Shown in pieces: positions 6,953 through 59,564 of a stretch of DNA of 64,000 bases (position 1 is the first letter of the stretch; each line of letters starts with the position of its first letter). The stretch lies in the sequence record NC_070956.1; one strand, 5' to 3'. The position numbers and the translations under genes are program-made. Below the pieces are notes generated by a model. It made no database searches. It worked only from the letters and a program-made list of their open reading frames with translations, and had not been told where the DNA came from.

Positions 6953-7174
6953 ATGCCCATTGTGGAAATCCTTCTTGGTTTGTTGGCACTACTGTACCTG
7001 TTTATAGGCTGGGAGATTTTCGCACCTATGGGTTGGTACTTTGGTGAACCATTCAAACGAACCTGGTATAACAACGTGTTATACTTTATCGCATTCCCCA
7101 CTGCTGTCGTGATGTGGTTGCCGATTCTTGCGATCATTGTCATTGGTGGGACAACGTTTAAGCGCGAACCGTAA
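6953..7174 (+). CDS. small membrane protein (73 aa, 2 predicted TM)
   Basis: AAGGAG SD, two hydrophobic segments. Confidence 0.7.
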   Translation: MPIVEILLGLLALLYLFIGWEIFAPMGWYFGEPFKRTWYNNVLYFIAFPTAVVMWLPILAIIVIGGTTFKREP

Positions 7175-15414: not shown

Positions 15415-16560
15415 ATGCATTTCTCTAAACCTCGTTTGGTAGTTGGTTTCGATATGGATGACACCATGTGTCAAACTGGCGAATACATCAAGCAAGCCAT
15501 CCGGCACTTCGCCCTCAAAACCAACAACAAAGACTTGTTGGACTACCTGGATCGGACAGTAGAACTTTCCACTATGCACTACGAACCCTGGGTCAAAGAT
15601 CTGGTTTGGTCTGAAGTAGTCAGCAATGGTCGCTTCATGCTCGATGCGTTACCCACTGACATCTGTAATGATGGTGGATTGGTAGATCGTGTCTCTCTTT
15701 TCCGTGACGAAGAATGCAAACACGGTGAAGTCGCACTTGTAATCTGTACTCACCGCGGGTTCCATGAACAAGGTAAACTGTTCACCGAGACCTGGCTCAA
15801 GGACAGAGGACTGGATTGGGTCTTTGATGAGATCCATTGTGTTTCCTCTAAGGAGCACAAAGATAAGATCAAGTATCTGAAAGAGCAATATCCTGGTTCC
15901 CACATCCTGCTGATCGATGACAACCCGATGGGCGACTCCGCACCTCACACCCCTGCCATGGACGAACTTATCATCTACGATAAGTACACCAAGTTCCAGG
16001 CATATAAAGATCAGGTTGTCTACCAATCTGATAATCAAGTCATCGAGATCATGCGTGATCGCTTGAAAAAGCAAACCCCGCTGACTATAGAAATGTATGA
16101 CAGTGGTAAAAAGATCGAAGCCAAGCATTACCTGAACGTCGGGCAGATGGTTCGACAACTCCTGGTTGTCGAACACCAGTACGCCAAGTCTCTTTATGAG
16201 ACATCTGGTTTGATCGATCCTAGCACACCCATCAACGAACTCGTTGAATACATCTCTGGATACGATAGCGACGCTGTCAAATCGTTCATCCTGTTCGCTG
16301 ATGGCGAAGCCGTTGGGTTTACCCGGGCTTTCAATGATGGTGATCCGGCGCACTGGAACCTCTGTGCGTTCGTTATCGACGAAGCGGTTCGAGGGAAAGG
16401 TTTCGGTAAACAGTTCGTTCGTCTGGTAGAAAACAAACTCAAGGCCAATGGTGCCGAAGAGATTGTCCTGGATCACAAATACGATAACGACCAAAGTTCC
16501 GCCTTCTGGCAAAAACTTGGTTATGTTCCACACACAGTTGTTTGTTCGAGGAAACTGTAA
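15415..16560 (+). CDS. HAD-superfamily phosphatase (NT5C-like) fused to a C-terminal GNAT acetyltransferase
   Basis: GFDMDDT (HAD motif I), ICTHRG (motif II), K..KI, LIDDNP (motif IV); C-terminal FVIDEAVRGKGFGKQ (acetyl-CoA motif A), N...AFWQKLGY. Confidence 0.85.
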   Translation: MHFSKPRLVVGFDMDDTMCQTGEYIKQAIRHFALKTNNKDLLDYLDRTVELSTMHYEPWVKDLVWSEVVSNGRFMLDALPTDICNDGGLVDRVSLFRDEECKHGEVALVICTHRGFHEQGKLFTETWLKDRGLDWVFDEIHCVSSKEHKDKIKYLKEQYPGSHILLIDDNPMGDSAPHTPAMDELIIYDKYTKFQAYKDQVVYQSDNQVIEIMRDRLKKQTPLTIEMYDSGKKIEAKHYLNVGQMVRQLLVVEHQYAKSLYETSGLIDPSTPINELVEYISGYDSDAVKSFILFADGEAVGFTRAFNDGDPAHWNLCAFVIDEAVRGKGFGKQFVRLVENKLKANGAEEIVLDHKYDNDQSSAFWQKLGYVPHTVVCSRKL

Positions 16561-17141
16561 TGACCAAAGCACTCTTTTCTGCAATCTGGGCACAAACCGC
16601 CGCTGGCGGTATGGGTATTGACAATACTCTTCCCTGGCCGCATAGTCCTGCTGACATGGAATGGTTCCGGAAGCACACCATGGGGAAACCCATCGTGATG
16701 GGTCACAACACCTACAAGTCCTTGGGCGTCCATCAGCTCAATGGTCGGTTGAACGTTGTGATTTCCAAGACGCAACCAGTGGGTGCAGAACACCTCAATA
16801 CCTACAACGGTCACGAGACCAATGAAGGACTGTACTGGGTTGAGTCTGTTGAACGTTTCCTGGAAACCGTTCCCAGTGCTTGGGACACCAAGGAAATCAT
16901 GATCATCGGTGGTCCGAAAACTTATGTTGAGTTTAAGGAAGTCATCGAGCGTGTCTACACCACCACCTTCATGGGCGAGTTCGAAGCCGAGATTGGACTC
17001 TGTTCACAGACTGACGCCGAGGAAGCGTTCCACACCGTTTACTATGATGAGTTCTCATCGAAAGAAGTGGTGTTCCGGATACTGGAGCGTATCGACCCGT
17101 CGGATGAACTCGATATCGAGGTATGGAAATTTAATGATTGA
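16560..17141 (+). CDS. folA: dihydrofolate reductase
   Basis: AIWAQ..GGMGIDNTLPWPHSPADMEWFRKHTMGKPIVMGHNTY.SL..LNGRLNVVIS, IMIIGG. Confidence 0.95.
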   Translation: MTKALFSAIWAQTAAGGMGIDNTLPWPHSPADMEWFRKHTMGKPIVMGHNTYKSLGVHQLNGRLNVVISKTQPVGAEHLNTYNGHETNEGLYWVESVERFLETVPSAWDTKEIMIIGGPKTYVEFKEVIERVYTTTFMGEFEAEIGLCSQTDAEEAFHTVYYDEFSSKEVVFRILERIDPSDELDIEVWKFND

Positions 17142-17370
17142 TCCAAGCATTTACATTTCCATTCTGGTGATCATCGCTGCTATCGTCTGGTTGGTGATCG
17201 GTGTGAATATCTCAGCCAGAGTTCATTGGGCATTTGGGACCCCGCATAACACCATGCGTTTTGGTTCGCGTCTGAAGAACAACGCCATTTTCATCGGTAA
17301 CGCTGTCTTTTGGCCCTGGTTGGGATTGTTCTTTCTCTACGCAATCCTCGAAGCAAATTTCGATCGTTAA
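17134..17370 (+). CDS. small membrane protein (78 aa)
   Basis: GAGG SD; two hydrophobic segments; followed by a terminator. Confidence 0.65.
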   Translation: MIDPSIYISILVIIAAIVWLVIGVNISARVHWAFGTPHNTMRFGSRLKNNAIFIGNAVFWPWLGLFFLYAILEANFDR

Positions 17371-17377
17371 TAAATAG

Positions 17378-17407
17378 CTCTTTGGGGTTTCGACCCCAAA
17401 GAGTTTT
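17378..17407 (+). terminator. intrinsic terminator
   Basis: CTCTTTGGGGT-TTCG-ACCCCAAAGAG + TTTT. Confidence 0.85.
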
Positions 17408-17420
17408 ATTTGTCTATAGT

Positions 17421-17445
17421 TTTTGAAACAGATATTATTAGGGTG
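17421..17445 (+). promoter_or_regulatory. putative phage early promoter
   Basis: TTTT-N6-GATATTATTA-N2-GTG (exact consensus). Confidence 0.7.
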
Positions 17446-17465
17446 TAAACGACAGGAGAACTCTC

Positions 17466-17558
17466 ATGGGATACTTTATATTGGTTTTGCTTTTGATCGC
17501 TGTTCTGGTTAAACTGGGACGGATAGAAAAGAAGTTGGGGAGAAAGAAAGATGTCTGA
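17466..17558 (+). CDS. 30-aa single-pass membrane micropeptide (not in the ORF track)
   Basis: CAGGAG SD; MGYFILVLLLIAVLVKLGRIEKKLGRKKDV; stop overlaps the next ATG. Confidence 0.6.
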   Translation: MGYFILVLLLIAVLVKLGRIEKKLGRKKDV

Positions 17559-18273
17559 ACAAGAAAAGCCGGTTATCAAGATTAACACATTCAGCTTTAT
17601 GTGTGACATCGATGATCAGGCGTTACACAAGTTTTTCGAGTTCTACGACTCGATGTCTGTCAAAGACGGATTGATAATCAATGTCTCAAGTGATGGCGGG
17701 AACCCGGAAGTAACACTGAAGATCCAGGACTTCGTGACATCGAGGAATCGCCCCACCCTGGTTGTCGCGATCGGTGATTGTTCCAGTGCTGCAATGGGAT
17801 TCTTCGGGATACGCGGAACTACCAGGCTCGCATACAGCAGTTGCCGGTTTATGGAGCATCAGCTCATGCTGAACACTCCCAAGATGAGTATCGAATCAAT
17901 CTACTCGTCCATTGATGAAGTTCAGTCCAGATCAGGACTCTTCGAACAGCGTCTCACTAACTGGTGTGGGTTGAGAGAAGAAGAGTGTAAAGAACTGTTC
18001 AGTCCCAACGATCTTTACTTTGATGCAATCGATGCATTGATGTTTGGTACAAGAGGGATAATCGATGGTATCATCATCCGTCAACTGGACGACTTCGAGT
18101 GGATCGTTCTCACCAGGGACGGGTTCAAACGTTTCATGTTCCCCAAGAATATCATCGATGAGAATCCGATATTAACGGATGAGGAGTTAAAAGAATATGG
18201 GCTGAAACCCTATAAACCCGATAACGTTATCAAAGCGATAGAACGACGTAAGCATCGTCAAGGTCGCGCTTAA
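17551..18273 (+). CDS. clpP: ClpP-like serine protease subunit with C-terminal extension
   Basis: INVSSDGG, GDCSSAA (Ser), RFMEHQ (His), NDLYFDAIDALMFG (Asp) align to ClpP motifs. Confidence 0.8.
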   Translation: MSEQEKPVIKINTFSFMCDIDDQALHKFFEFYDSMSVKDGLIINVSSDGGNPEVTLKIQDFVTSRNRPTLVVAIGDCSSAAMGFFGIRGTTRLAYSSCRFMEHQLMLNTPKMSIESIYSSIDEVQSRSGLFEQRLTNWCGLREEECKELFSPNDLYFDAIDALMFGTRGIIDGIIIRQLDDFEWIVLTRDGFKRFMFPKNIIDENPILTDEELKEYGLKPYKPDNVIKAIERRKHRQGRA

Positions 18274-18302
18274 TCACAACACACTTAATAAAGGAACCAG
18301 AC

Positions 18303-19931
18303 ATGTCCATTCTGAATGATGTAACTTATACCAACCGTGCCGGCACTCGTGAAATCATCGACGAGGTTGTCCAGGAGGCATTCGATAGCGTTTGCTCCAC
18401 CATGGGTCCGGATGGTAACTATGTGGTGATCAACCAATCCAACGTCCCGGTCACCACCAAAGATGGTGCGTCTGTGGCCAAGGCATTGGATTTCGGTGAA
18501 ACCCGTCGGAACATGATCGCGCAACTGGTACGTGAGCCGAGCTTGCGAGTGGAGCGGGAAGTTGGTGATGGCACCACCACCACTGTCTTCATGACCACCA
18601 AGCTCTACCAGGCGTTCTGTGACAACATGACGTTCCGTGAAATCCGTTTCATCGATTCCATGGTTGGTAAAGCGCTCGAAGCTCTCCGTAAGCTGATCAT
18701 CCCGGTTAAGGCGAACTCCCCGGAGTTCAAGCTCATGCTGACCACCACCGCGAACTATGAGACCGAAATCGTAGATCGGATCCTGGACCTCTATCAAGGT
18801 GATGCACTCCCGAACATCACACTTCGGAAGAATCCGAGCATCCCCGAGGACCGTGTTGAACGTGTCACTGACCTCCGTTACAACGGTGCGTATCCGTCAC
18901 CTGAAATTCAGGCTATGAGTAAAGCTCCTCGTAGTCGGATCACTTTCGGTGCCGGCACAACTGTGGTTGTGGTTGACAGCAACATCGAAACCATCCAGAT
19001 GGGTGACCTGGCTCGTCTGGCACAGCCTGGTGGGGATCCGGTAGTTATCATCGCTACCAGTTTCTCCATGGCTGCCATTCAAGCAATCAAGGGTTACTAT
19101 CAGATGGCCAACGAAGAGGCGCTGAAGGCGCTCCAGGCTGATAAGAATGCCAATGTTGCATTGACTGCACCCATCGTTCCGTTCACCGTACAAGCTGGCG
19201 GGACTCTGGGTAAAGCGATGTTGCTGGAAATGGCACAGCTGCTGGGGCTGACTACTGCGGTAGATCTGTCCAATGGTATCACTCTCGCTAAAGAGTGTGA
19301 TGCTCCTTTTGTTCTGAGCCAAGACGGTGTGACCATTCCTCGGGATTGCGAACACGTAGAAGCTCGTCGCAAGGAAATGCTGGAAATCAATACCGCCCAG
19401 TACGAAGAGCTCGATCAAGCCACTCGTCAAAAGGCACCTGGTCTGATGTTGTTCGAACGCATCGGGATTCTTTCTGGTACCAACATCACGGTCAGTGTGA
19501 CCGGTCAAACCGAGAGTGATTGCTCTGAGCGTTACTATCGCTACGAGGACGTTATCACCGCTGCCCGTAGCTCACTCGGGTTCGGTGTACTTCCTGGTAT
19601 TGGTTGGGGGTATCTGCAAGCGGCGAAGGAGGTCGAGGACCACTTTTACGAAGTGGGAGTCACTCAGGATCAACGTATCCTGATGGATAAGTTCCTGGAT
19701 GTTCTTCGCGCCCAGTACACTTACCTCACCGGCAATGTTTACCGGGACATGGATCGTGTCACCTTCCTGGATCTCACCACTGGTGAAGAATCCAAGGATC
19801 CTGGCAAGGTCTATGATAACGCTGCCGCAACCTGTCTCGCTCTTGAGAGTGGTTGGGGTGCTGCCAAGACCCTGGGTAAACTGAGTACCATCACTGGTCG
19901 TGGCGATACCAACTATCTCCACAAACGTTAA
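18303..19931 (+). CDS. groEL: phage GroEL-like chaperonin
   Basis: STMGPDG, TTKDGASVAK, EVGDGTTT, RYEDVITAAR..GVLPGIG, VYDNA; 542 aa. Confidence 0.95.
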   Translation: MSILNDVTYTNRAGTREIIDEVVQEAFDSVCSTMGPDGNYVVINQSNVPVTTKDGASVAKALDFGETRRNMIAQLVREPSLRVEREVGDGTTTTVFMTTKLYQAFCDNMTFREIRFIDSMVGKALEALRKLIIPVKANSPEFKLMLTTTANYETEIVDRILDLYQGDALPNITLRKNPSIPEDRVERVTDLRYNGAYPSPEIQAMSKAPRSRITFGAGTTVVVVDSNIETIQMGDLARLAQPGGDPVVIIATSFSMAAIQAIKGYYQMANEEALKALQADKNANVALTAPIVPFTVQAGGTLGKAMLLEMAQLLGLTTAVDLSNGITLAKECDAPFVLSQDGVTIPRDCEHVEARRKEMLEINTAQYEELDQATRQKAPGLMLFERIGILSGTNITVSVTGQTESDCSERYYRYEDVITAARSSLGFGVLPGIGWGYLQAAKEVEDHFYEVGVTQDQRILMDKFLDVLRAQYTYLTGNVYRDMDRVTFLDLTTGEESKDPGKVYDNAAATCLALESGWGAAKTLGKLSTITGRGDTNYLHKR

Positions 19932-19936
19932 TTGAA

Positions 19937-19958
19937 AGGGAACCCTTCGGGGTTCCCT
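19937..19958 (+). terminator. intrinsic terminator
   Basis: AGGGAACCC-TTCG-GGGTTCCCT + T-rich tail. Confidence 0.85.
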
Positions 19959-20033
19959 CTCTTATTTATACATTTTATTTTTGTCTCCAACCAGTATCTG
20001 TTGTAACTCAATTACCACATGAAGGAATGAGCA

Positions 20034-20882
20034 ATGTCTAAAGTGCATTTTATCTATGGTCCCATGAACAGCTCCAAGACCACTACACTCATCACCACCG
20101 CGTACAACTACCGTGAAGAAGCACAGAACCCGGTCATCATGAAACCTTCCCTGGATACTCGGGATGGTGTTGAACCGATGATAAAGTCTCGTCCTGGTCT
20201 GACCGCTGCCTGCCAACTTTTCGACAAGAGTGAGAATCTCTTCGTCAAGGTCGCTGCACTCTCTGGAGCTACCCAGGAAGAACTGAACTGGCTGGAAGAA
20301 AACCTCCCTCCTCGACCCGCACCGGATGTAGCCGAAATGGTCTCTGGTATCAGAACCGCCTGGATCAACAAGGGGGTGATGCTCAAGGACATCCTCCCTG
20401 GCTATGACCAAAGTCGTCTTGACGAACTCAGCGAGATGCTGAAGACCCAGAAAGTCAGGGTGAAAGAATACCAGTACACCCGCCACCAAACTCTGGAACT
20501 CTTCGGGACCCGCATCAATAAAACCATCGACTGTGTTCTGGTTGATGAAGTTCAGTTCCTGACCGAGGAACAGGCCCTCGATCTCCTGGACATCGCCGAT
20601 TATCTCCGTATCCCTGTAATGGCCTTTGGTCTCCGGAACGACTTCAAAGGGGAAATCTTCCCTGCCTCCAAGATCCTGATGGCTCAGGCAGAAGTCTGTA
20701 AAGAGAACAAGGGTGTGTGCTGGTGTGGTCGTAAAGCCACCCACGTACTCCGCATCGCCGAAGATGGTACTGTGGATACTGATGGTCCTCAGGTTAAGGT
20801 TGGCGGTAATGACACCTACAAATCTGTCTGCCGTTATCACCACCGTGCCGGCATGTATCGTAAGCCAGGGATTAATAGCTGA
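20034..20882 (+). CDS. tdk: thymidine kinase (TK1/type II) with about 85-aa insertion
   Basis: GPMNSSKT P-loop, DTR, VLVDEVQF, FGLRNDFKGEIF, Zn-site C-W-C...C, GGNDTYKSVCRYH. Confidence 0.92.
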   Translation: MSKVHFIYGPMNSSKTTTLITTAYNYREEAQNPVIMKPSLDTRDGVEPMIKSRPGLTAACQLFDKSENLFVKVAALSGATQEELNWLEENLPPRPAPDVAEMVSGIRTAWINKGVMLKDILPGYDQSRLDELSEMLKTQKVRVKEYQYTRHQTLELFGTRINKTIDCVLVDEVQFLTEEQALDLLDIADYLRIPVMAFGLRNDFKGEIFPASKILMAQAEVCKENKGVCWCGRKATHVLRIAEDGTVDTDGPQVKVGGNDTYKSVCRYHHRAGMYRKPGINS

Positions 20883-20900
20883 AGATTTAACATGGAGAAT

Positions 20901-20925
20901 ATTTCAGACCGATATTACTATAGTG
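20901..20925 (+). promoter_or_regulatory. putative phage early promoter
   Basis: ATTT-N6-GATATTACTA-N2-GTG. Confidence 0.65.
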
Positions 20926-20974
20926 AAGATACATAGGGTATCTCATTAATGTAACTACATCGGAGAAATATAAC

Positions 20975-21664
20975 ATGGCTATCATCACTATCAAATCTGT
21001 ATCCCTGGTTGGCGTTTCCAAGTTCGTCCGTGCCTTCGCCTTTGACGAAGATAAGATGGGTGTTCACCAGGCCATCATGGAAACTCCTGAGTATAAGGAG
21101 CTTTCCAAACTGACCGACATGAGTCAGTATGACAAAGATGTTTGTGCAATGGACTACGAAATCAAATTCGAATCCATCCGTCACAAACATCATCCGCTGA
21201 ACAATCAAACTCTGCGTCAGCAAATCTGGTACACCACCCTGGAAATCGTTAAAGAGGAGAAGATCAAATTGGAACCCATCGAAATCAAAGTACCGCGTAT
21301 CAAGGTTGAAAGCTACACCCGTGAACTGGACTTCGGTCGTCAGTACCGTAGCCTGCACGCCAACAAGATCACCAAGTCCAAGAACTACACCGGTATGGCC
21401 GTTGGTGCTCTGGCTGCCGTTGGTCTGGAAATTCTGGCTGAAGACAGCAACACTGCATCCATCGTAGCTGCTGCCGCAGGTGCTGGTCTGGGTGCCCTGG
21501 CTGTATCCAACGCCGCCGAGATGATGGATGACAACCTGGCCAACTCTGCACTGCTGGGTCTGTACACCATGTCCGCCGGTATCATGTTCGGTCGCATCAC
21601 TGCGGCCCTGACCGCTGACGATGAAGTCGAGCAAGTTTCAGCAGAATACGCTGACGAGCTGTAA
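20975..21664 (+). CDS. hypothetical protein with C-terminal Gly/Ala-rich hydrophobic (glycine-zipper-like) helices
   Basis: GGAG SD; GMAVGALAAVG, AAAAGAGLGALA, ALLGLYTMSAGIMFG. Confidence 0.8.
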   Translation: MAIITIKSVSLVGVSKFVRAFAFDEDKMGVHQAIMETPEYKELSKLTDMSQYDKDVCAMDYEIKFESIRHKHHPLNNQTLRQQIWYTTLEIVKEEKIKLEPIEIKVPRIKVESYTRELDFGRQYRSLHANKITKSKNYTGMAVGALAAVGLEILAEDSNTASIVAAAAGAGLGALAVSNAAEMMDDNLANSALLGLYTMSAGIMFGRITAALTADDEVEQVSAEYADEL

Positions 21665-57976: not shown

Positions 57977-58726
57977 GTGATCGATATCACTACTCTTAAA
58001 CATGATCGAGGACTGCCTGGCGCAGTCCTCAAACTCATGCCTGATGGCTCCGCTGTCGCTACCAAGCGATTGAAGTGTTGTATACCCAAGAACTGGGAGC
58101 GGAGTAATCTTGCTGAGATCGCTGACGTTGTAACGACTATTCTGATGGTGGGTTTGATCTGTGACGGTAAGTATGCAATGCTGGGTGGAATGACTCGCAT
58201 TGTTATGAAGCCGGGTGAGATCGATGAAATCTCTATCGGTGGTACTCGGTACTACATCTTTGATTTCGAGCCGGGTGAAGTGGTTATCGAGAACATGACC
58301 ATTCCTCAGGACAGCAACATCGGATATTACTACTACCTCGAGTTCACCAAATATGCTCGACTACCGTGGTATTGTTCCGAGGCCAGTTTGCTCGCCGTTT
58401 ACGACGCAGCAAAGTTCTACACTGGCAAAGGGTTTGGGACCAGTAACCAATGTATCCGGGTTTTGTACGCACTTGTAATGCGTGATCCCAACAACCTGGA
58501 TTTACCATTCCGTTACTCCCCTGATTTAAACAAAGGTGGGAAACCGAAAATCATCGGTATCAACAACCCGGGTCAACTGCTCAACAGTACCTTCTCTCGT
58601 CTCTCGTCTGGTTATATGGCTGATAACATCATCGGTGGTATCCTCAACCCTGATACGAAGGTTACTGAGCTTGAAGAAGTAATCCGTGGTCTTCCTGCCG
58701 AACTGAGAGACAATAGCAATGTCTGA
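57977..58726 (+). CDS. phiKZ gp176/SPN3US gp244-like protein (proposed vRNAP beta' C-terminal piece)
   Basis: synteny directly before the prohead protease; IP......LAEI, LPWY, R.P.....FR motifs recalled. Confidence 0.55.
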   Translation: MIDITTLKHDRGLPGAVLKLMPDGSAVATKRLKCCIPKNWERSNLAEIADVVTTILMVGLICDGKYAMLGGMTRIVMKPGEIDEISIGGTRYYIFDFEPGEVVIENMTIPQDSNIGYYYYLEFTKYARLPWYCSEASLLAVYDAAKFYTGKGFGTSNQCIRVLYALVMRDPNNLDLPFRYSPDLNKGGKPKIIGINNPGQLLNSTFSRLSSGYMADNIIGGILNPDTKVTELEEVIRGLPAELRDNSNV

Positions 58727-59564
58727 AATTAGTTTCGGGAATATCATCCTGGCTAACAGCGGTAAACAGGGCATACTGAAACCCGACGCTACCGGTCGTT
58801 ATCTGTTGAATGCTGGCGGGTTCAATATCGCCAATGCTAGCGGGATTAACTATCCCGCTAACCAATACATCATCTCCCAGATGGACAAGAACTCCGACCT
58901 GATGCGTCGTGTCAGTCAGGGTTATTGCAAGATGGAAGTTGAACATCCTGAACCTTTCGTTTATGTGGAAGAGAACGGTGTTCGCTACAAGAAAGCAATG
59001 ACTTCCATTCTGGAGTGGATCAACCGGCTCCGTAGCTACGATCCTGATCGTATTTGCGGACTCATCAGTGAGATCGCTTTCCGTCCCACAGATCCCAATG
59101 ATCTGACCAAGCCGATCTACAACATGATCTACTGTGAACCCTTCGGTCCCCGTGGACCTGAGTTCAAAGAGTCACTGAACAACCCCCGTCACAACACAGC
59201 CGTTTCCATCCGTACTCAAGTTTCCCCTTTCCGTCCTGGTGACAACAAGAAAGAAGTCGAGTACTGGGTTGGTTATGACTGGGTCGGTGAGCCTGGCATG
59301 GTTCATGCCAACAAGCACATGACTGCTGGTTGTGAATCGCTGATCCTCAATCTGAACGACAACGTACAGAAGTTCAAGGTCGCTGACGTTCTGGATGCAA
59401 TGGAAGAGATGTTCACAGATGCCACCGCTAATGCTGAAGCTCTGGAGCGGGTTGGTGGTATGGAGTCTCTCAATGCCATGCGTGAAATGCACAACCGTCT
59501 GAAGCAGAATTACCGCACAGGCGAAACTGTTCGGATGGGTGCCAGCTTTGCCGATATCTTCTAA
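58719..59564 (+). CDS. prohead (head maturation) serine protease, phiKZ gp175-like
   Basis: MEVEHP (His), PFGPRG...L.NP..NTAVSIRT (Ser), YDWVGEPG; synteny. Confidence 0.85.
   Translation: MSEISFGNIILANSGKQGILKPDATGRYLLNAGGFNIANASGINYPANQYIISQMDKNSDLMRRVSQGYCKMEVEHPEPFVYVEENGVRYKKAMTSILEWINRLRSYDPDRICGLISEIAFRPTDPNDLTKPIYNMIYCEPFGPRGPEFKESLNNPRHNTAVSIRTQVSPFRPGDNKKEVEYWVGYDWVGEPGMVHANKHMTAGCESLILNLNDNVQKFKVADVLDAMEEMFTDATANAEALERVGGMESLNAMREMHNRLKQNYRTGETVRMGASFADIF

Follow-up and report, generated by a model that had tools for sequence, protein, structure and literature searches.

The 64,000-nucleotide stretch of sequence record NC_070956.1 analysed here (the window) belongs to the genome of the Aeromonas phage LAh10, and it contains what appears to be a short early transcription unit in which the gene of a ClpP-like serine peptidase is followed by that of a GroEL-like chaperonin. 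The reading that we favour, with a probability of roughly 0.6, is that this unit supplies an accessory peptidase of the ClpP type, likely independent of an ATPase, that is made together with the phage chaperonin and is not the capsid maturation protease. The region between positions 17300 and 20000 is 100% identical to MK838116 / NC_070956 (a window position is the record position minus 124000). LAh10, a nucleus-forming jumbo phage of the genus Ludhianavirus in the Chimalliviridae, has a 260-kb genome that codes for a nuclear shell protein, the PhuZ tubulin and multisubunit RNA polymerases. Over the 17300-20000 region it shares approximately 92% identity with its sister phages D9, D3 and D6. 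The unit is built in the following order: a strong hairpin, a promoter motif, a hydrophobic open reading frame (ORF) of 30 codons, the ClpP-like gene, the chaperonin gene and a second hairpin.

17376-17405, + strand: hairpin resembling an intrinsic terminator, which closes the upstream unit (13 bp and then a T tract; supported by its minimum free energy, MFE)
17422-17447, + strand: promoter motif of the early (virion RNA polymerase) type, compared with the OBP/N1M2/EL/phiKZ consensus (PMC7058600) and found at the same place in relatives
17466-17558, + strand: ORF of 30 codons whose product is hydrophobic in its N-terminal part and has a basic tail; annotated in D9, D3 and D6
17551-18273, + strand: serine peptidase of the ClpP family, 240 amino acids (aa), core at residues 11-175, with Ser79/His103/Asp154
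18076-18270, + strand: C-terminal extension of the ClpP-like protein, residues ~176-240, structured in the AlphaFold2 model
18303-19931, + strand: GroEL-like phage chaperonin of the OBP gp246 type, 542 aa (Pfam Cpn60_TCP1, phrog_5725, PDB 6hdd)
19937-19958, + strand: GC-rich, terminator-like hairpin directly after the GroEL stop codon (by MFE), with equivalents in relatives

The limits of the unit are given by the two hairpins, both of which are more stable than shuffled sequences. The upstream one has an MFE of -22.1 kcal/mol (z = -6.3), with its 13 bp followed by a T-rich tract, and is invariant in D9, D3 and D6; the downstream one reaches -18.8 kcal/mol (z = -4.2), and each of the 17 phages examined has a GC-rich hairpin, with a T tract, after its GroEL stop codon. 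The spacer of 29 nucleotides (nt) that separates the ClpP-like and GroEL genes is unstructured (MFE 0), neither a promoter motif nor a hairpin was found between these two genes in LAh10, and a search of Rfam recovered no known RNA family in 17000-20300. The relatives present the same picture: the motif precedes either the membrane ORF or the ClpP-like gene in OBP, CF8, ZPAH34, AH04, AhC3_1, SXP01 and Kc263, with a weaker match inside a small upstream ORF in N1M2, and in the relatives examined no motif was found between ClpP-like and GroEL genes, the next one coming after the thymidine kinase gene. In phages that lack the ClpP-like gene, the motif is located directly before GroEL (EL, VP4B and RisingSun) or further upstream (Miami). 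Co-expression of the ClpP-like and GroEL genes of LAh10 from one terminator-bounded transcription unit is well supported, and by analogy with OBP, N1M2 and phiKZ the unit would be an early one. A first-pass annotation of this DNA, whose listed elements are all present at the positions given, had proposed a co-expressed unit flanked by terminators, in which no hairpin separates clpP from groEL, and its proposal agrees with the two hairpins, with the early-family motif, with the bare interior and with the order of promoter, ClpP-like gene, GroEL and hairpin that the relatives keep.

The same annotation described the promoter motif as an exact early one; the motif is indeed there, and it is not an exact copy of the OBP consensus. 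Sliding 12-mers taken from the leader gave a peak at approximately 17421-17437, and a pattern derived from the window itself matched 5 sites where 1.1 would be expected, each of them on the + strand, a statistic that is circular because the pattern was fitted to those same sites. An independent comparison is offered by the consensus strings that the N1M2 genome paper prints for the promoters of N1M2, OBP, 201phi2-1, EL and phiKZ (PMC7058600, Table 2). The 24-nt core of the OBP consensus finds 8 sites in the window with at most 3 mismatches, against 0.01 expected, and all of them are on the + strand; the site of the unit, 17422-17445, has 3 mismatches, that is, 21 of the 24 core positions are matched. 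By its sequence the motif is thus a clear member of the published set. The OBP motif was judged to be early from its position ahead of early operons (PMC7058600), and according to a review the AT-rich motifs that have been found bioinformatically turned out to be early promoters of the virion RNA polymerase in all of the jumbo phages profiled so far (PMC7598289). Downstream of the motif, the first ATG is met after 19 nt and belongs to the 30-codon ORF. With a later gene as the first cistron, the leader would measure approximately 104 nt, as compared with 31-53 nt at the other four sites, and translation of the 30-aa peptide is therefore mildly favoured.

The assignment of the peptidase to the ClpP family does not depend on a single comparison. 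Residues 31-175 match Pfam CLP_protease with 27.9 bits (cut-off 20.2), and so do 77 of 81 relatives; a search of the PDB with the single sequence gave a weak match, and a profile of 35 relatives matched ClpP structures at E 2.5e-28. The AlphaFold2 model of the monomer, built on 81 sequences, has a pLDDT of 96 and a pTM of 0.91. When this model was compared with the PDB by Foldseek, all 50 matches listed were ClpP chains aligned over approximately 172 columns, with target TM-scores between 0.64 and 0.83 (mostly 0.73-0.83) among the matches listed, even though the identity to cellular ClpPs is only about 16-22%. Judged from the predicted structure, the protein has a true ClpP fold. As compared with bacterial ClpP (MEROPS S14, PF00574; for example that of Thermus thermophilus, TtClpP, PDB 6hwm/6hwn), the fold is alike (target TM-score ~0.8, root-mean-square deviation ~2.2 Å over ~172 columns), the triad and the oxyanion glycines occupy homologous positions, and the handle helix is also present, at residues 114-139 of the model. 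The phage protein differs in its ~20% identity, in the lack of some 18 N-terminal residues and in an added C-terminal extension of about 65 aa, and its gene differs in having no cognate AAA+ gene and in being part of an early operon with a chaperonin.

The catalytic residues have been kept. Ser79, His103 and Asp154 align with Ser97, His122 and Asp171 of TtClpP, which have been named as its triad (10.1101/578260). Across 81 sequences Ser79, His103 and the oxyanion pair Gly49-Gly50 are invariant, and the column of Asp154 holds an acidic residue in 62 (Asp in 47 and Glu in 15). The ratio of nonsynonymous to synonymous substitution rates (dN/dS) of the gene is 0.05-0.07 with respect to D9, D3 and D6. 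Since the triad is kept and dN/dS is low, the product is a functional, and probably active, serine peptidase.

The two ends of the protein are where it departs from its cellular relatives. At the N-terminus it is shorter than ClpP by approximately 18 residues, in the region of the axial loops: ten residues precede the first strand of the core, which starts at residue 11, as compared with about 27 in TtClpP, where it starts at residue ~28. The alignments begin at chain residue ~28 of TtClpP, and residue 31 of the phage protein falls on chain residue 49, so that the canonical N-terminal axial loop, or gating region, is absent. The N-termini of the relatives are variable or of low complexity; most members of the family start with Met-Ser-Glu, including members whose N-terminal extensions are long and have nothing else in common, and the nine closest sequences all keep Met1 and Glu3. 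At the other end, the extension of ~65 residues beyond the Pfam match (which ends at residue 175) is confidently predicted by AlphaFold2 to fold into three strands followed by two short helices. Its first half is common to most sequences of the 35-member alignment, its distal tail is specific to the subgroup of Aeromonas phages, and Pfam finds nothing significant in it. An intact Ser/His/Asp triad and an extra C-terminal stretch of about 60 aa had both been noted in the first-pass annotation, and both are borne out by these comparisons.

It is well known that ClpP is normally inert without an AAA+ partner, that its rings are heptameric, and that its N-terminal axial region matters for its work with its ATPases (cf. 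the title of PDB 1tg6). The region that the alignments show to be missing from the phage protein argues against ordinary coupling to ClpX or ClpA. The phage also appears to lack an ATPase of its own. At E <= 1e-4, Pfam families of Clp-type AAA+ proteins or of Cpn10 were found in none of the 58 other ORFs of at least 80 aa in the window, as the first-pass annotation had said of ClpX/ClpA and GroES genes; in a further 20 large hypothetical ORFs from other parts of the LAh10 genome, no domain of a Clp ATPase or of Cpn10 was detected, the only hit being a sub-threshold match to AAA_18, and the LAh10 annotation names no Clp ATPase or GroES-type product. Given the lack of an axial region and of a phage-encoded Clp ATPase, the peptidase, which would assemble into ClpP-like rings, is more likely to act early in infection and independently of an ATPase, with unfolded chains or peptides as substrates, than to serve as the core of a standard ClpXP or ClpAP. 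The first-pass annotation had suggested activation by the protein's own tail as one possible mode, and poisoning or redirection of host ClpXP as another.

These same features bear on the proposal that the phage subunit takes over the Clp system of the host, either by docking on host ClpX or ClpA or by forming mixed rings with host ClpP, and so redirects or blocks degradation by host ClpXP/ClpAP, with antitoxins or phage proteins as possible substrates. In its favour are the true ClpP fold with its handle helix, the intact triad, the lack of a Clp ATPase among the screened phage ORFs, and early expression, which would suit host takeover. On the other hand, the identity to cellular ClpPs is only ~16-22%, the N-terminal axial region with which ClpP works with its ATPases is absent, and the protein is made bulkier near its C-terminus by the conserved module; we consider takeover of the host system unlikely.

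The last gene of the unit codes for the chaperonin. Residues 6-538 match PDB 6hdd ("Putative chaperonin GroEL") at E 2e-119, with 6tmt next at 5e-43; Pfam Cpn60_TCP1 is matched with 46.8 bits (cut-off 34.3) and phrog_5725 at 4e-98. By tblastn the identity is 42.6% to the chaperonin gene of OBP and 27% to that of EL, and dN/dS of the gene is 0.02. From these sequence comparisons, the protein is a bona fide phage chaperonin and a close relative of OBP gp246, whose structure has been solved. Chaperonins of the OBP and EL type reportedly work without GroES, and it is only for the OBP and EL proteins that ATP-dependent holdase/foldase activity and ring stoichiometry are known. The EL chaperonin has been reported not to interact with GroES, an unrelated cofactor being left open, and the substrates and cofactors of such phage chaperonins are described as still open (PMC7185714).

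The comparison with these two phages is instructive. In OBP the genes OBP_244 (putative Clp protease subunit), OBP_245 and OBP_246 (gp246, 6hdd) form a homologous module that has the same promoter motif upstream and lies in the same genomic block as in LAh10 (acetyltransferase, dihydrofolate reductase (DHFR), small membrane ORF, ClpP-like, GroEL and thymidine kinase), and the two chaperonins are 42% identical over their full length. OBP differs in that OBP_245, a protein with two transmembrane (2-TM) segments, is inserted between protease and chaperonin, in that its small upstream ORF has 71 aa as compared with 30 aa in LAh10, and in that its ClpP-like protein lacks the distal tail motif of the Aeromonas-phage group. 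The chaperonin gp146 of EL (PDB 6tmt) is GroEL-like and, as in LAh10, its gene lies between a promoter motif of the same type and a hairpin; it is ~27% identical to the LAh10 chaperonin and has no ClpP-like gene upstream. EL gp145 was considered as a hidden ClpP-like protein and was rejected, given that the family profile does not detect it.

The notion that the ClpP-like protein is the head maturation (prohead) protease has been introduced by database labels. RefSeq and GenBank use the name "head maturation protease" for homologues in N1M2 (gp192, L004:2880-3527, in coordinates of the loci that we fetched), AH04 (gp229, L007:2787-3425), ZPAH34 (gp176, L011:3197-3970) and AhC3_1 (ORF36, L010:3218-3967), and prohead proteases with a ClpP fold do occur in other phages, as seen in matches from BFVD. 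The window itself contains the following gene:

58719-59564, + strand: prohead protease of the Peptidase_S80 family, phiKZ gp175 type (Pfam PF20034, E 5e-69; phrog_3014)

By its family assignment, this product is the real head maturation protease of LAh10, and therefore the ClpP-like protein is not. Like the ClpP-like protein, the phiKZ gp175-type enzyme is a phage-encoded serine protease, but the two are unrelated in family and in fold class, and LAh10 carries both, with distinct functions. Furthermore, the ClpP-like gene has an early-type promoter, is located among the genes of DHFR, thymidine kinase and thymidylate synthase, outside the structural module, and has been lost in related phages that have deposited genome records. 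Given the separate S80 enzyme, the nucleotide-metabolism context and the losses, a role in capsid maturation has next to no probability left and is effectively excluded. The labels on the homologues are very probably wrong and mis-transferred, since the family to which these phages belong has a capsid protease of the S80 type.

How closely the peptidase and the chaperonin are associated can be judged from their distribution. A phage database was searched by tblastn with LAh10 and OBP proteins, and the loci that were fetched were confirmed with a hidden Markov model of the family. The ClpP-like family was found in 19 distinct chimalliviruses (LAh10, D9, D3, D6, CF8, AhC3_1, AVP1, ACP1, PS1, PS2, AerS_266, ZPAH34, SXP01, N1M2, Sureiya, Yubaba, Kc263, OBP and AH04), and in all 19 GroEL lies approximately 30-560 nt downstream on the same strand. 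Nine metagenomic contexts were also available: a chaperonin is immediately downstream in six, the contig is too short to tell in two, and none is nearby in one (P0018). Conservation of the neighbourhood, which the first-pass annotation had put forward as a check, thus holds in the 19 phages and in six of the nine contexts, within a single clade: a tree built by neighbour joining from 21 fetched chaperonin sequences groups the ClpP-bearing genomes together, with EL, RisingSun, Miami and VP4B outside their clade. The sequences suggest a history of one gain, long vertical retention and two losses in which GroEL was retained. One of the losses can still be seen in pAEv1810, where a 33-codon ORF between the promoter motif and GroEL (gp222, L009:3847-3948) looks like the ClpP-like gene after one internal in-frame deletion, with the conserved N-terminal residues and the distal tail motif kept, which makes this phage a natural ClpP-less variant to compare with. 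The other loss is common to pEt-SU and Survivor. Because GroEL persisted through both losses, it does not depend on the ClpP-like gene, and the link between the two is not obligatory. In these phages the entire segment from acetyltransferase and DHFR, through small ORFs, ClpP-like, GroEL and further small ORFs, to thymidine kinase keeps one gene order, and this collinearity, together with the restriction to a single clade, makes the adjacency weak evidence of functional coupling; a "fold-or-degrade" coupling of protease and chaperonin is possible, as an inference only.

The strongest form of coupling would be a physical machine, in which a heptameric ClpP-like ring sits on the single-ring chaperonin by means of the C-terminal module, and either receives unfoldable substrates for degradation or acts as a lid. 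Several observations are compatible with it: both genes have been inherited together through a deep divergence, with identities down to ~25% for the ClpP-like protein and ~33% for GroEL; they are probably co-transcribed; the deposited entry of the OBP chaperonin, 6hdd, has 7 chains, the number of subunits of a ClpP ring; an unrelated cofactor of the EL chaperonin was left open (PMC7185714); and the extension is predicted to be structured and is conserved. The phages themselves speak against it, as GroEL occurs without the ClpP-like gene in EL, Miami, VP4B, RisingSun, pEt-SU, Survivor and pAEv1810, other ORFs are found between the two genes in OBP, N1M2, AH04, Kc263 and SXP01, and the work on the OBP and EL chaperonins, including their solved structures, dealt with each of them alone. 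Such a machine is accordingly very unlikely. Its specific version, in which a gate-less ClpP-like ring docks coaxially through its C-terminal module on a seven-fold, single-ring chaperonin in the place of GroES, is a long shot; if true, the phage would have a fold-or-degrade chamber of its own that works without an AAA+ unfoldase. Kc263 (gp186, L013:3657-3965) and AH04 (gp231, L007:3640-3960) have a small soluble ORF of about 100 aa between their ClpP-like and GroEL genes, and the two products look alike at their N-termini.

The small ORFs that accompany the unit deserve separate consideration. In LAh10 the 30-codon ORF has an AGGAG located 7 nt upstream of its ATG, and its stop overlaps the start of the ClpP-like gene (17551) by 8 nt; the overlap had been seen in the first-pass annotation. 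This arrangement suggests that the ORF is probably translated and coupled to the ClpP-like gene through the overlap. The peptide, with a strongly hydrophobic first half and a basic end, matches no Pfam or PHROG family, and jackhmmer finds no homologue outside Ludhianavirus. The idea of a membrane micropeptide as a member of the unit therefore stands as far as the presence and the hydrophobic character of the ORF are concerned, and does not extend beyond this genus: the ORFs at the corresponding place in N1M2, SXP01, pEt-SU and Survivor resemble it only in their hydrophobic-then-basic pattern. Among the four Ludhianavirus genomes the ORF has three differences and lies in a mosaic block of 95-100% identity; its low dS and its dN/dS of 1.5 are meaningless, because the differences are too few and the block is mosaic.

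The conserved membrane component is a different, 2-TM family, which in LAh10 lies upstream of the first terminator:

17134-17370, + strand: 2-TM membrane protein of 78 aa, a neighbour outside the unit, taken here in the short form of LAh10 gp120 that D9, D3 and D6 annotate

By jackhmmer this family has members in SXP01, N1M2, AhC3_1, ZPAH34, AH04 and CF8; it precedes the ClpP-like gene in CF8, AhC3_1 and ZPAH34, and is found between the ClpP-like gene and GroEL in N1M2, SXP01 and AH04. ORFs of similar build, with two TM segments, occupy matching places in Kc263, OBP, pEt-SU and Survivor, where jackhmmer does not detect them as family members, and Pfam shows nothing significant in the 2-TM proteins. 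The coding sequence of gp120 as deposited for LAh10 (16909-17370, 153 aa) overlaps the 3' end of the DHFR gene by ~230 nt and its start is probably over-extended, as D9, D3 and D6 annotate only the 78-aa protein at this place. A paralogue of the family is found at window positions 6953-7174 on the + strand (jackhmmer E 2e-18).

The presence of these ORFs raises the idea of a membrane-associated peptidase of ClpP fold, tethered or regulated by the adjacent small membrane proteins in the manner of SppA/NfeD, which would act on membrane or secreted substrates, the adjacency to GroEL being incidental. A small hydrophobic ORF does abut or overlap the start of the ClpP-like gene in LAh10, D9, D3, D6, OBP, CF8, ZPAH34 and two metagenomic loci (L018 and L028), members of the homologous 2-TM family are encoded next to the gene in eight phages, and 6 of 81 members of the peptidase family also match NfeD1b_N. 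Against this, the peptidase has no predicted TM segment (maximum hydrophobicity 1.56), the membrane ORFs differ from phage to phage in type and location and are present next to GroEL even without a ClpP-like gene (pEt-SU and Survivor), and small membrane ORFs are common in the early regions of phages, so that an attachment to the membrane seems distinctly unlikely.

The ClpP-like family is a small one. An exhaustive search of representatives among 1.8 billion proteins recovered 84 of them at E <= 1e-3, a word-indexed protein search returned the D6 orthologue only, and a scan of IMG/VR viral contigs with the alignment of closer relatives gave no confirmed relatives. Neither the window nor the first 50 kb of LAh10 contains a second ClpP-like gene.

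Taken together, these observations make the reading of an accessory peptidase made with the chaperonin the one that we prefer. The unit would start at a promoter motif of the virion-RNA-polymerase type and end at the hairpin directly after the chaperonin gene; peptidase and chaperonin would be made together because both handle non-native proteins at an early stage, and the peptidase would be accessory, having been lost twice in the clade. A number of points weigh against this reading. The label "early" is applied to the LAh10 motif by analogy with OBP, N1M2 and phiKZ. The presumed independence from an ATPase is deduced from two things only, the missing N-terminus and the absent phage ATPase gene, and it is possible that a host ATPase is used or that the extension is a new docking site. 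The screen for a co-chaperonin is as sensitive as Pfam and product names allow. The adjacency of the two genes is one inherited event in one clade, inside a block that is generally collinear; the distant family member P0018 does not adjoin a chaperonin, and the ClpP-like gene is absent in pEt-SU and Survivor and deleted in pAEv1810, all of which keep GroEL. Finally, a search of the literature on this protease family, or on its pairing with a chaperonin, found only mentions at the level of annotation, such as that of phage Z90, in which a Clp protease (ORF 191) and GroEL (ORF 192) are grouped as "virion assembly-related" (PMC12837969).

These phages carry a conserved viral branch of ClpP under purifying selection, in which the catalytic residues have been kept, the axial region has been dropped and a folded module has been added. 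Such a branch would be a natural example of a ClpP rewired for proteolysis that is independent of a partner or differently partnered. Its inheritance together with phage chaperonins that lack a co-chaperonin makes the ClpP-like gene a concrete candidate for a cofactor or companion enzyme of these chaperonins. For the databases, the "head maturation protease" labels that RefSeq gives to the homologues call for a correction.

Downstream of the unit, the window continues with a gene of nucleotide metabolism:

20034-20882, + strand: thymidine kinase, a neighbour located between the GroEL hairpin and the next promoter motif (20902-20927)

No early motif of its own was found for the thymidine kinase gene in LAh10 or in the phages where this could be checked, and its expression may come from read-through or from a promoter of a different class. 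The linkage of GroEL, a small ORF and thymidine kinase reaches Miami, VP4B and RisingSun. Elsewhere in the LAh10 record, outside the window, four tRNA genes (Trp, Asp, Asn and Thr) are found on the - strand at approximately 214793-215294, in a 4-kb stretch that carries no annotated feature. Finally, the identity between LAh10 and D9 is a mosaic over 16500-21100: it is 95-100% over 16860-17700, 85-90% inside the ClpP-like and GroEL genes, and 100% at approximately 20220-20640, a pattern that suggests recombination among Ludhianavirus genomes.

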